In this document: piece by piece, positions 41,786 through 46,303 of the stretch
Numbering within the stretch: position 1 is the stretch's first letter
How the letters are laid out: the number at the start of each line of letters is the position of its first letter
Virus record (IMG/VR): IMGVR_UViG_3300042305_001773
Span: 124,001 to 188,000 of that record
Direction: 5' to 3' (one strand)
Length of the DNA stretch: 64,000 nt
Made by a program: the position numbers and the translations under genes
Notes under the pieces: generated by a model
What the model was told of the DNA's origin: nothing
The model's database searches: none
Seen by the model: the letters and a program-made list of their open reading frames with translations, nothing else

Positions 41786-44700
41786 TTAATTATTCAGTAT
41801 GGCGCGAATCGTGTTTCGCAGGTTTGTGTTCGTATTTAATTGCGCAATTAGCTCGTTAAGAAACGCGCCAGATTTAACAATTTCGGCCACGTTAATTGTG
41901 ATGGTGCCGTCAATTGCGGATGCGTTTGCGGTGATAGTACCGCTACCGATAGCCGACGGTGTAAATGTAATTATACCTCCGGTCGGCACGACTCCGGTTG
42001 CACCCTGCGGACCTGTTGCGCCGGTCGCGCCGGCGTTACCACACGGGCCCGTCGCGCCAGACGGACCGATTGGGCCGGTTATGCCCGCGGGACCTTGCGC
42101 GCCCGTAGCGCCTCGTGCTCCGGGCGTACCGGCGGGACCCATAAGCCCTGTCGCGCCGGTCGATCCGCGCGGCCCAGCTTGGCCTTGAGGTCCGACAGGC
42201 CCCACGGCGCCCACGGGACCTGTCGCGCCAACTGCGCCGGTTTGTCCGTTTTGACCGGCCGGACCTTGTGAGCCGGGCGGCCCGATCGGGCCGATTGCGC
42301 CAGTTGCGCCCTTGTCTCCTTTGTTGCCGGTTAATCCGCGCGGACCTGTGGCCCCGGCTGGACCGACCGGACCCGTAGCGCCAGTGACGCCGGTTGCGCC
42401 TGTTGCGCCTCGCGGGCCAGTCACGCCCGTTGCGCCACGAGGGCCGGTAGGGCCGGTGGGACCGGTTGGACCTGTGGGGCCGGTGGCGCCAGTTGCTCCG
42501 GTGGCTCCAGTTGCTCCGGTAGCGCCAGTTGCTCCGGTAACTCCTGTCGGGCCTGTTGGGCCGCGTGGACCAGTAAGACCTGTCAGGCCGGTAACGCCTT
42601 TGTCTCCTTTATCGCCTTTGGCGCCGTTTGCGCCTGCCGGGCCGCGTGGGCCTGTGGCGCCGGTTAAACCTGTGTCGCCTTTATCGCCTTTGGCGCCGGC
42701 GGCACCGGCGTCTCCTTTGTCTCCGGTGCAGCCGGTTGGACCCATTTCGCCTTGCGGGCCGATAATACTTAAACCGGGTAAACCCTGAATACCTTGATCG
42801 CCCTTATCTCCTTTATCGCCTTTGTCGCCCTTGTCGCCTTTAAGCCCTTGCGGCCCGGGAAGACCCGGCAAACCCATAAAACCCGGCGGACCCATCGGCC
42901 CCGGGACGCCCTGCAGACCTTTATCGCCTTTGTCGCCTTTATCGCCCTTGTCGCCGGTATCGCCTTTATCGCCTTTATCGCCAGTATCACCTTTGTCGCC
43001 TTTGGCGCCGCCGTCGCCTTTATCGCCTTGCGGCCCCTGCGGTCCCGGAGGTCCCGGCACGCAGCTACCGCCGCTTCCGCCACCGAGACCGCCGCCGGAA
43101 CCAGCTGGGCAATCTGTTGTGTTTAAATTGATATCAATGTTGAGCTGATCACCGTCAACTGTGATCGTGCCGCTGCCGAGACCAGACGGATAAATATTGA
43201 CGGTGCCACCTGCAATCTCACATTTTGGGATCCAGAGATAGGGCTCAATTTTCCACTTACAGTCGCCAAGATCGTGAACTATGATCTCGGCGCGCGCGTC
43301 TTCGTCGCAGCCGACGATTAATGCTCGACCCACGCTGCCCTCGATTTGCGGCACGCAAACCGGCACGCCAATGTCGATATCCAAAGCATACGAACACAGC
43401 GGCGGCTCATCAGGCGTAGAGCCGGGTGTTGTTGTCGGCGTAACTGTGCCGTAACCGTACGGATAAGTCGACTCCGTAACATCGACGTTTAATGTAATGA
43501 TTGGACACGGCGCCGGCGGGCATTTTGGAATCCACAAATACGGCGTGAGTTTAAATTCGCAAAGATCGATCTGTTCGACCAGAATTTCGGCGCGAGCGTC
43601 GATACCGCAGCCTGTGAGTACAGTACCTTCGCCGCCTGTGATTTTTGTGAGGCACGGCTTCGGCATTCCGAGATAAAGCGGCAGAATAACGTCGCAGTAG
43701 TAGCCGGGATCAAAGTTAAATATTGGCGCGCCAGAAAACGCATACGGATCGGCTTGCGGCGGCAGCACCTGCAAATCGACGATCATCGACACCGTTGTGC
43801 ACGGCGGTTTTGGAATTTTGATGTACAGCTCAAAATCAACTTCAAAGCAGCAGACCGGCGGATCGTTCGTGCCGCGCTTCTCGTCGTATTCAGGGCACTT
43901 CTCGATCTCAAATTTGAACCGCGGTACGACGTCGTAGCCGACTTCGTGATCAAGATTCTTGACGCGAAATTGTGTGCACGGCGGCCGGGGCGTCGGTATG
44001 TCGATGTGGATGTCGAACAAGAAATTGCACGAGCCCGGATCGTTGCAGGTCGGCGGTGTTGATACCGAAATGAGATTGAAAAAACTCGGGGTGTTACTGA
44101 GCCGACCGGCGGGACCGTCTTTATAATGACTATTAACAGTGAGAAAGCGCGCAAGCGTCGGACACCGTGGCCGCGGAATCGGCACGACGATTTCGATCTC
44201 GATATCAAAATCGCAGCGCTCGGGCTGATCACAACCGGAAGCGGGTGTTACTGTTTTTGTGATCTCAAAACGCGACTGTCCAGCGGCGCAGCTTGTACCA
44301 GCAAAGCCTGTTTTAACAGTGAACAGCTTTTTGGCGATGTCGATACACGGCGGCGGCGGGATTGGTACAACGATCTCTAAATCAATATCAAAATCACACT
44401 GGTCCGGCGTGTTGCAGTCGCCCGGCGTTACGCGCGATGTAATTTCAAAGCGGTTTGATTTACCTTGCACGCACGGCGAATCGCTAAAACCGGTAGACAC
44501 ATCAAATTTCGTGACATTGATGTTCGGGCACGGCGGCTTTGGAATTGGAATATCAATTGTGAGATCGATATTGAATTCGCACTGATCTGGTGTGGTGCAG
44601 TCGCCGGGAACGTGACTCGTTGTGATCTCAAATTTTGACGAGCCTGTACTGCACGTGGGGTCGTCAAAGTGAGTGTTAACCTCAAACGTTCGAGTATTAA

Positions 44701-46303
44701 TGATCGGGCACGGCGGGCGCGGGATCGGCACCACGATGGTGAGATCAATATCAAACTCACACTGGTCCGGCGTGTTGCAGTTACCCGGTGTTCGTCTTGG
44801 GGTTATTTCAAACGTTGAACCGCCCTGCACGCACGACGAGTCACTAAAGCCAGTAGTGACCTCAAATTTTTTGCGGTTGATAATCGGGCATGGCGTACGT
44901 GGGATTGGTACGACAATTTCTAGCTCAATATCAAAGACGCACTGATCGGGATTGTTGCAGTCTCCCGGAACGTGGTTGGTGGTAATTTCAAATTTAGACG
45001 GCGTCTGCACGCACGAAGAGTCGCTAAACCCCGTCGTGACTTTGAGCACCGGCGAATTGATAATCGGACACGGCACGCGAGGGATTGGAATAACAATCTC
45101 TAGCTCAATATCAAATTCGCATTGACCGGAACTATTGCAGTCGCCGGGAGTGTGGTTGGTTGTGATTTCAAATTTGTTACCGCCGGTTAAACACCCTGAA
45201 TCGTCATAGCCGCTGGTGACCGTGAGTTTTGGTTGGTTAATAATCGGACACGGTACGCGCGGAATCGGTACAACAATTTCGAGTTCAAAATTGAACTCGC
45301 ACTGATCGGGGTTGTTGCAGTCGCCGGCGATATGATTTGTCGTGATCTCAAAACGATTTGTACCCGTGAGACATCCGGCGTCGTCATATCCAGACGACAC
45401 TGACAAGTTGGGCGAGTTCAGCGTCGGGCACGGTGTGCGCGGAATCGGCACAACGATTTCTAGCTCGACGTCGAACTCGCACCGGTCCGGCGTATTGCAA
45501 TCGCCGGGCGTGTGACGCGGCGTGATACTGAAAAAGTTTTGTTTGTCTTCAACGCACGGCGAATCAGAAAAACCGCTGTCGACAGAGAAGCTAGTCAGAT
45601 TAATTGCCGGACACGGCGGCCGCGGGAACGGAATGGCAATTTCTAGCTCGACTTCAAAACGACACTGATCAGCCGTGTCGCAATCTCCCGGGGTGATGAT
45701 CTGCTCAATTGTTAATTTGTTTTGCTTGTTGAGCATACAAGGGGAGTCGGAATACCCCGAGTACACACCAAAGTCGGTGACGACAATTTGCGGGCATGGC
45801 GGTTTCGGCACTGGAATCTTGAGATCCAGATCAATGACAAACTCGCACTGGTTGGGCGTCTTACAGTCGCCGGGCGTAATAATCGGCGTAATACGGATTT
45901 CGCTCAGCGGCGCAATACAATCCTGATAACCAACTTCTAATCCGAACTCACCGGCTGTAAGCGTCGGGCAAGGTGTGCGCGGTACCGGCACATTGATATC
46001 TAAGGTGACGTCGTAACGGCACGGGTCGATATCTTGTCGCGTGATCTTCAGTTCGTTTTTAGGCGGCGGGCAGCCATCGTCGCCGTCGCCGACAAAGTTG
46101 ACGTCAATCGACGTCAAAGTCGAGAAATCAGGGCAGCGGTTGCCAACTTCTGTCGGTGGTTCGCGCGGAATGATCGGCGCCTGACAGCCGTAGATTGGCG
46201 GCGGCAACGGTTCAATCTCGCAAACCGATGAAATGAAATCGAAGTCTACCTTTGGGGTAGGATCGATCGGGCACTGCGAGTCTTTAAAAAGATTTTCAGG
46301 CAT
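41786..46303 (-). CDS. large Cys-repeat plus collagen-like tail fibre (~1505 aa)
   Basis: Tandem ~60-aa four-Cys repeats, then ~115 Gly-X-Y triplets; start MPENLF right after the upstream stop. Confidence 0.85.
44165..45970 (-). repeat. ten tandem ~180-bp coding repeats (CPxI...G[FY]xDxxC...FEIT...PGDCxxPDQCxFDIxLxIxxPIPRxP)
   Basis: 1806 nt / 10 units, aligned by eye. Confidence 0.9.

Follow-up and report, generated by a model that had tools for sequence, protein, structure and literature searches.

A four-cysteine repeat array joined to a long collagen domain in a probable tail fibre of an uncultured freshwater phage

A 64,000-nucleotide stretch of DNA (positions 124,001 to 188,000 of IMG/VR virus record IMGVR_UViG_3300042305_001773, referred to hereafter as the window) carries a gene for a protein of 1505 amino acids (aa) in which an array of cysteine (Cys)-rich units is followed by collagen. 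Our results suggest that this protein is probably a long trimeric fibre, attached to the baseplate of an uncultured freshwater tailed phage of ~205 kb, with a rod made of three intertwined chains. The intertwined trimer, which covariation among unit sequences suggests, is the weaker part of this reading and attachment to the baseplate the stronger. As in tail fibres, the gene lies in the same block as a baseplate gene and the protein sequence has a conserved N-terminus and a variable distal part. The appendage type is ordinary for a phage and the rod module is new: the libraries searched contain no description of the unit, of its interleaved Cys code or of a long collagen domain fused to it.

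Layout of the fibre protein

The fibre is encoded on the minus strand. The most plausible start codon is the ATG at 46303, 1 nucleotide after the TAA that closes the upstream gene. There were no differences between this region and contigs from four lake-water runs, and a single contig from run X2, an independent one, covers the whole repeat array (43519-46600). Since the array is reproduced without differences in independent contigs, it is not an assembly artefact. The open reading frame (ORF), the gene and the segments of the protein are listed below with their source (HMM, hidden Markov model; iE, independent E-value).

41786 to 46390, minus strand: fibre ORF (ORF list)
41786 to 46303, minus strand: fibre gene, 1505 aa plus stop codon (ORF list, translation)
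46166 to 46303, minus strand: Cys/Pro-rich N-terminal anchor, residues 1-46 (alignment A5 of 18 homologues)
45992 to 46165, minus strand: first, degenerate unit, residues 47-104, with C1, C2 and C4 present and C3 missing (unit HMM, iE 1.4e-4)
44186 to 45991, minus strand: ten canonical four-Cys units of 58-61 aa, residues 105-706 (HMM, iE 1e-22 to 2e-30 per unit)
43823 to 44185, minus strand: two degenerate units, residues 707-768 without C2 and 769-827 without C2 and C3 (HMM, iE 1.7e-19 and 1.1e-8)
43220 to 43822, minus strand: mixed degenerate region, residues 828-1028 (HMM matches at 828-843 and 927-979)
43100 to 43219, minus strand: pre-collagen beta segment, residues 1029-1068 (segment HMM, iE 1.4e-16)
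43055 to 43099, minus strand: Gly/Ser linker, residues 1069-1083, with Cys 1081 just ahead of the collagen (translation)
41987 to 43054, minus strand: collagen domain of 118 G-X-Y triplets, residues 1084-1439 (Pfam PF01391, E 9.6e-51)
41870 to 41986, minus strand: post-collagen copy of the beta segment, residues ~1440-1478 (BLASTP E 1e-6; HMM iE 8.4e-10)
41789 to 41869, minus strand: C-terminal helix-type tail of 27 aa, residues 1479-1505 (C-termini of homologues; alignment with the 299-aa protein described below)

The protein contains 69 Cys, 66 of them within the first 1081 residues. Canonical units were delimited by cutting at the hinge motif [VI]P[IVFT]P[RKP]x[PR]C, which was found 12 times at a spacing of 58-62 aa. 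The spacing of the four Cys (C1 to C4) was C-x18-C-x17-C-x5-C in ten of ten canonical units, pairwise identity among these units was 33-72%, and the positions that are invariant or nearly so belong mainly to the Cys/Pro framework. In total there are ~17 modules, i.e. one degenerate, ten canonical and about six degenerate. The unit HMM recognises residues 54-104 (weakly), 707-768, 769-827, the start of 828-880 and 927-979, and the Cys pattern of modules 707-768 and 769-827 reads '1-34 1--4'. Within residues 828-1028, unit-like modules (828-880 and 928-982) alternate with two copies of a different element of ~46 aa (881-927 and 983-1028) that ends in PYLWIPKC. A PDB sequence search with residues 828-1061 gave no relative.

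The collagen domain consists of two runs (1084-1179 and 1182-1439) separated by a single 2-aa break, and its match to PF01391 scored 169.8 bits against a cutoff of 27.2. It is rich in G-D-K and G-A/P-T triplets and contains Cys at 1192 and at 1421, near the end of the helix. The segments flanking it (1029-1068 and 1439-1478) are related to each other (12 of 34 identities by BLASTP), and one segment HMM matches both.

An earlier reading of this DNA, made from the sequence alone, had described ten near-perfect repeats of ~60 aa at 44165-45970. The number and the position stand, with a shift of 7 aa in phase; 'near-perfect' does not agree with the identities given above. Four invariant Cys per repeat, as that reading proposed, are indeed present in all ten canonical units. 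Its count of about six degenerate copies was right, although these are of two kinds rather than one, and its estimate of ~115 Gly-X-Y triplets was close to the 118 counted. The kinship that it saw between the beta segments on the two sides of the collagen is borne out by both BLASTP and the shared HMM.

Gene order and homologues

The fibre gene belongs to a block of genes on one strand. The first gene of this block encodes a Baseplate_J / T4 gp6-like wedge protein (56875 to 58596, minus strand; PF04865 E 1.6e-11, phrog_6 E 1.2e-18), and at the end of the block lie the fibre, a 299-aa collagen protein and small genes. The fibre gene lies nine genes downstream of the Baseplate_J gene. Related IMG/VR loci keep the gene order over the stretch that runs from a 619-aa gene past the fibre gene to the small downstream genes; the immediate upstream neighbours were matched in 31-32 of 33 related loci, and many of these loci sit on contigs of 193-205 kb.

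A word-index search yielded 71 homologues of 832-2579 aa, all metagenomic, with 2-25 units each. This range fits the sequence-only proposal that repeat number sets the length of the fibre. Twenty-eight apparently full-length homologues contained 5-25 units and 0-187 collagen triplets, and the two numbers were positively correlated (rho 0.50, phylogeny uncorrected). Because units and triplets rise together, the fibres are not kept to one total length.

The N-terminal ~46 aa were common to 18 of 18 aligned homologues (832-3281 aa), with invariant columns that include F6, F21, F23, C28, P34, P36, C40 and P43. The distal half varied in the number of units, the length of the collagen, the presence of an inserted PF12708 domain and the type of C-terminus, of which there are several. 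Phage receptor-binding fibres usually combine a proximal end that is constant with a distal end that varies. In P0012, a close relative, the pectate-lyase-like PF12708 domain (E 4.2e-18) lies between collagen stretches. The pre-collagen beta segment was found in 70 homologues, once in 59 and twice in 11, and variants of the C-terminal tail terminate most collagen-bearing homologues as well as the 299-aa protein of the next gene.

The largest relatives depart from this layout. P0073 (3281 aa) has no collagen; anchor, beta segment and C-terminal tail are all retained, and the protein carries insertions of ~100-200 aa between C2 and C3 of each unit; P0073, P0078 and P0079 (2909-3281 aa) match the second half of the unit profile only. 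In giants of the P0073 type, inserted domains seem to be displayed on a scaffold of units. P0065 (1481 aa) has units of ~49 aa that contain C1 and C4 only and are nearly identical to one another, so that the array looks like a recent expansion. Its sequence stops right after the pre-collagen beta segment. A Pfam search of the C-terminal 392 aa of P0065 did not recover the families that had been precomputed for this protein.

Covariation of cysteines across unit junctions

Among 794 full units, C1 was present in 792, C4 in 791, C3 in 721 and C2 in ~647. The sequence-only reading had made its case depend on the Cys being kept in homologues, and C1 and C4 are kept in more than 99% of these units. 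In 818 consecutive unit pairs, C2 of one unit and C3 of the next, C2(n) and C3(n+1), were both present in 752, both absent in 53 and discordant in 13, giving 805 concordant pairs. C2 and C3 of the same unit showed no association. C2(n)-C3(n+1) was also the strongest coupling in a direct coupling analysis (DCA) of two adjoining units. The Cys patterns of whole arrays obey the same rule, whether internal ('1-34 12-4'), terminal ('1-34 1--4') or in the '1--4' runs of P0065. In 18 of 18 aligned homologues the first unit has C57, C78 and C95 invariant and no conserved Cys at the place of C3, as would be expected if C3 depends on a preceding C2. At least four distinct contexts of joint C2/C3 loss were counted.

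This covariation points to pairing of C2(n) with C3(n+1) across the junction, and gain and loss of the two as a pair is the predicted behaviour of disulfide partners. C1 and C4 couple in DCA and are in register within a parallel ladder of strands. Arrays can lose C2 and C3 and yet retain C1 and C4, and the four Cys therefore make up two separate links rather than one Cys4 site. We also compared the unit with Cys4 metal sites of the zinc-ribbon or knuckle type: there are no CxxC knuckles, and the four Cys are not lost as a set. The sequence-only reading had proposed a 'stapled' fibre. Conserved Cys that behave as pairs agree with it; its geometry, four Cys within one unit, gives way to C2(n)-C3(n+1). 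Oxidation of these Cys would follow release of the phage or use host factors.

A thioredoxin-fold ORF (genome C1:50483-50731, plus strand, locus L131; PF00085 E 1.3e-11) was the sole thiol-redox protein found in the phage.

Strand architecture

DCA was carried out on 1019 distinct units (effective number 848). An initial mean-field analysis with a heavy pseudocount was noisy, and the version with shuffle-normalised scores was used instead; the column shuffles ignore phylogeny. Three ladders were found. Positions 8-21 run parallel to 50-61 (offset 41-45), positions 33-41 run antiparallel to 50-61 (sum 89-95) and positions 11-18 run antiparallel to 31-41 (sum 46-52). An AlphaFold2 (AF2) monomer model of three units (residues 345-532, 103-row alignment) had a mean predicted local distance difference test score (pLDDT) of 83.8. 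Its secondary structure agrees with the ladders: C1 is followed by a long strand, the chain then comes back in a return strand, and another long strand follows C4 and continues through the VPIP hinge into the next unit. The strands each present one hydrophobic face; in the last strand the opposite face is acidic.

Three strands that all contact one another do not form a lone flat sheet. Closure by three chains into a nine-stranded tube would be the simplest solution. In the ladder registers, C2(n) and C3(n+1) would lie level with each other where two units meet. The rise would be ~17 residues (~5 nm) per unit, and ~17 modules would give a rod of roughly 90 nm.

Collagen helices of the G-X-Y type are three-chain structures, and from the long collagen domain the fibre is therefore predicted to be a trimer. 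At a rise of 0.286 nm per residue, the 356 collagen residues add about 100 nm. Such helices require a trimerisation module that sets their register. In the fibre collagens of E. coli O157 prophages, trimerisation modules cap the helix on both sides (PMC3368898). By analogy, the two beta segments and the C-terminal helix may be read as the registering device of the present collagen.

Searches for relatives of the unit

Pfam gave no family on residues 1-1061 even at E<=10, Big_9 included, and known fibre families (PfN, PfC, Phage_fiber_2 and others) had no profile match in Pfam or PHROGs to the 1061 aa that are not collagen. The PHROG matches (25 best of 40) all fell within residues 1066-1460, i.e. 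in the collagen part. A tblastn search of 50,697 GenBank phage records gave no match, and PDB sequence profile searches with the unit were empty or at chance level.

Structure searches with the three-unit model gave a similar picture. Foldseek against the PDB found nothing convincing (best E 9e-3 at a template modelling score, TM, of 0.14). One uncharacterised phage protein in BFVD matched the model (E 4.5e-4). The wide VIA search gave no Z score of 5 or more (best Z 3.0). TM was at most 0.24 in the AFDB clusters, where the top match was a tandem-95 repeat protein (E 8e-5, TM 0.20), and at most 0.48 in the Atlas; an Atlas feature search gave no lead (best score 0.58). The sequence-only impression that the repeat is unlike known fibre repeats is thus upheld, there being nothing convincing in Pfam, PHROGs (non-collagen part), PDB, AFDB or the Atlas.

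A HMMER profile of 87 diverse units, run exhaustively against 1.84 billion protein representatives, matched 84 proteins. The strong matches inspected share the N-terminal anchor of the fibre. At least three at the weak end (P0107, P0111 and P0118) are unrelated bacterial proteins with Big_9 or cadherin-like tandem repeats, matching unit positions 2-40 only. Comparison of the unit with a Big_9-type repeat by hhalign gave a probability of 64% over 35 of ~106 columns. These alignments are compatible with a possible distant link of the unit to the Big_9 Ig-like family. A protein-level scan of contigs from 185,579 prokaryote species genomes (one per species) gave no relatives; a degenerate DNA pattern found 97 stretches in the same genomes, with real units on only one contig, of 3.9 kb, binned into a metagenome-assembled genome. 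As far as searched, these results show the unit family to be confined to relatives of this fibre.

Neighbouring genes and environment

The source virus record is a single contig of 205,044 bp that CheckV rates as complete. The sequence-only assignment of the protein to a phage is supported by this complete genome, by a terminase in the window and by the Baseplate_J-like gene that heads the block. Three further genes near the fibre are listed here.

46305 to 47543, minus strand: upstream 412-aa protein, stop 1 nucleotide before the fibre start codon
40884 to 41783, minus strand: 299-aa, nearly all-collagen protein directly downstream of the fibre, sharing a GPCGN motif and the C-terminal helix with it
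26536 to 28467, plus strand, opposite to the structural block: large terminase of the GpA type (GpA_ATPase; phrog_675 E 8e-55)

The N-terminal 243 aa of the 412-aa protein were conserved in 32 loci, and its C-terminus was variable. Its AF2 model has a confident stretch at residues ~20-150 and no PDB match (best E 0.25). The possibility that its C-terminus is a third copy of the beta segment was rejected, the segment HMM having no match at E<=1. Two adjacent 573-aa ORFs proved not to be paralogues.

Of 33 related loci, 20 have the 299-aa collagen gene next to the gene for the fibre. The 299-aa protein could form a second fibril, a short one, or act as a partner of the fibre tip. Two more collagen-repeat ORFs lie outside the window (genome C1:68065-70632, minus strand, 856 aa; C1:85574-86428, minus strand, 285 aa), so that the phage encodes four collagen-like proteins in total. 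The unit HMM matches none of the other three.

An ORF of 92 aa (40185-40463, minus strand), two genes after the fibre and conserved in 24 loci, consists of a single Big_1 (invasin/intimin-type Ig-like) domain, above the Pfam cutoff (E 2.4e-10). A gene for a sigma-70-like factor lies among the structural genes, a short way upstream of those for the baseplate (59566-60420, minus strand; Sigma70_r3 E 1.6e-9, with weaker region 4 matches). An AAA ATPase (20744-22228, minus strand; PF00004 E 1.7e-27, phrog_8638) and a hexapeptide-repeat transferase-like protein (18134-19135, minus strand) are encoded downstream of the terminase region.

31-mers of the fibre gene occur in 24 lake or freshwater runs. 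The sequence-only reading had imagined a fibre that reaches through a planctomycete envelope or crateriform structures; nothing points there in a host inference confined to the environment, for which lake or fresh water is the only fact. The moraphage paper (PMC12619734) makes no mention of collagen and contains nothing that ties its lineage to the present phage.

Proposed assembly and alternative explanations

We propose the following assembly. The N-terminal anchor would dock on the baseplate with three chains side by side. Each chain would contribute three axial strands per unit, one up (after C1), one down and one up again (after C4, through the VPIP hinge into the next unit), and the nine strands would close as a tube with a hydrophobic core, an acidic outside and a rise of ~5 nm per unit. 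Each junction between units would be tied by C2(n)-C3(n+1), most simply as a disulfide formed in oxic lake water, while C1 and C4 would face the core of the tube. The two beta segments and the C-terminal helix would set the register of the collagen, which would add ~100 nm of thin, flexible reach, and the distal half would contact the host surface, where the close relative P0012 has its pectate-lyase-like domain. We raise tentatively, as a possibility short of an expectation, that the rod is a new fibrous fold of nine-stranded tubes with interleaved C2(n)-C3(n+1) disulfides and six core-facing C1/C4 Cys per level, these forming disulfides or binding metal.

Several results weigh against a trimeric fibre on the baseplate. 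The end of the protein after the collagen is 66 aa long, and no receptor-binding domain is evident in this protein. None of the eight genes between the Baseplate_J gene and the fibre has a Pfam family, and one has weak PHROG matches only. Pfam searches of the phage's own genome for sheath (PF04984, PF17482), gp25 (PF04965) and Terminase_6C found nothing, which we attribute to the phage being too divergent for these models. With so few recognisable tail genes, the tail assignment depends on one baseplate match and gene order. The PHROG 'tail fiber' matches are driven by collagen and hence are not independent evidence of function. As for the rod, many of the junctions that lack both C2(n) and C3(n+1) are orthologous, forming 2 clusters at 35% identity and 16 at 45%, and the nominal p of 1e-69 for the association therefore greatly overstates independence. 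Raw DCA scores reach ~3.1 in shuffles through conserved-column artefacts, and only the pairs 8-52 and 9-54 exceed this. A search of the phage's own genome found no Erv1/ALR or DsbA. The AF2 model is that of a monomer, and the trimer geometry is inferred.

With these points in mind, other explanations have to be considered. The protein might be a virion fibre other than a tail fibre, such as a head fibre, a decoration fibril or a neck whisker, with its N-terminus on the capsid or collar and its collagen pointing outward. This would suit the terminase, a head-type gene close downstream, the small C-terminal trimerising tail with no globular tip, the three further collagen ORFs, which suggest several types of fibril, and the run of eight genes without a named family that separates the fibre from Baseplate_J. 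However, a baseplate wedge gene heads the same-strand block in which the fibre is the final large gene, this order is kept in related loci, and a close relative of the fibre carries a tailspike-type pectate-lyase-like domain, typical of host-directed tail appendages. We regard a site away from the tail as quite unlikely. The units, for their part, might be beads on a string, each an independent small Ig/cadherin-like (Big_9 / tandem-95) domain with its Cys paired within the chain, the trimer being formed in the collagen only. Such an arrangement finds backing in the weakest HMMER matches (bacterial Big_9/cadherin-like Cys repeats, at unit positions 2-40), in the hhalign result, in the tandem-95 protein at the top of the AFDB matches, in the best VIA matches (tandem cadherin, Rib and SasG rods) and in the fact that AF2 folds a single chain (pLDDT 84). 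Yet these matches are below a convincing level (TM<=0.24, Z<=3.0, no Big_9 at E<=10), and a lone three-stranded sheet cannot satisfy three long strands that each have one hydrophobic face and are laddered in all pairs, which makes independent beads improbable.

The Cys might also bind metal, for instance with C1 and C4 of the three chains forming axial thiolate sites at every unit. The needle of T4 gp37 has iron sites of the His-X-His type. C1 and C4 are more than 99% invariant and fall on the alternating face that carries the hydrophobic residues, and the virion is assembled in a reducing cytoplasm by a phage without sulfhydryl oxidase or DsbA. On the other hand, loss affects C2 and C3 jointly across the junction and spares C1 and C4, so that the four are not one tetrahedral site; there are no CxxC knuckles, and pairwise gain and loss fits disulfide partners. 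Metal binding by the Cys is rather unlikely, but the invariant, core-facing C1 and C4 may still form such a site. Among these explanations, a long trimeric fibre attached to the baseplate is the one that we favour.

Significance and comparison with known systems

Phage fibres decide which cells can be reached, and fibre rods are a source of self-assembling protein materials. The present data set offers ~1000 distinct units of a module that has no relative described so far, follows a simple Cys code and comes in natural arrays of 2-25 units. A clade of ~200-kb freshwater phages, to which no cultured member was matched, can also be recognised by this fibre. If the cross-junction pairing is a disulfide, the fibre would be a covalently laddered trimer fused to ~100 nm of hydroxyproline-free collagen. 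This would be useful for the design of nanofibres that combine stiffness with flexibility, and would help to explain how ~200-kb lake phages span thick envelopes or capsules. If the nine-stranded tube is correct as well, the rod would be a covalently laddered one that evolves its length in steps of ~5 nm.

The G5-E repeats of SasG and the Rib domains resemble the present rod in being long, thin and built of short tandem beta modules, and gave Z 2.5-2.7 to the model. They are monomeric and Cys-free. Unlike the present unit, they belong to cell-wall proteins of Gram-positives, and there is no significant similarity. The tandem-95 / Big_9 (PF17963) repeats, like the unit, are tandem beta repeats with a C-P-x-I start and a second Cys ~19 residues on, and they are the only non-fibre proteins reached by the unit profile; unlike it, they are ~106 aa long and have a Cys pattern of their own, and the Pfam Big_9 model has no match to the fibre.

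Among phage fibres, gp34, gp37 and gp12 of T4 are segmented trimeric beta rods with N-terminal attachment and distal specificity, and in gp37 the strands run along the fibre axis with axial bound ions. The present fibre has no sequence or fold match to the T4 fibres, which in turn lack a regular 60-aa unit, a Cys framework and collagen. The report on Agrobacterium phage Milano (PMC10811340) describes a disulfide network in the tail, a precedent for covalently locked virion parts. The disulfides described there are in the tail, where they are reported to prevent contraction (PMC10811340); they do not form a repeat-by-repeat ladder along a fibre.

Closest in layout is EPclA-D of E. coli O157:H7 prophages, in which, as in the present fibre, a G-X-Y helix lies between trimerisation modules that are not collagen (PMC3368898). 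EPclA-D is trimeric and needs no hydroxyproline (PMC3368898). Its caps are PfN, PCoil, Pf2 and PfC (PF08400, PF03406, PF06820), none of which was detected in the present fibre. Unlike EPclA-D, the present fibre has as caps two beta segments of ~40 aa and a short helix, and ~1000 aa of Cys-linked modules precede its collagen.

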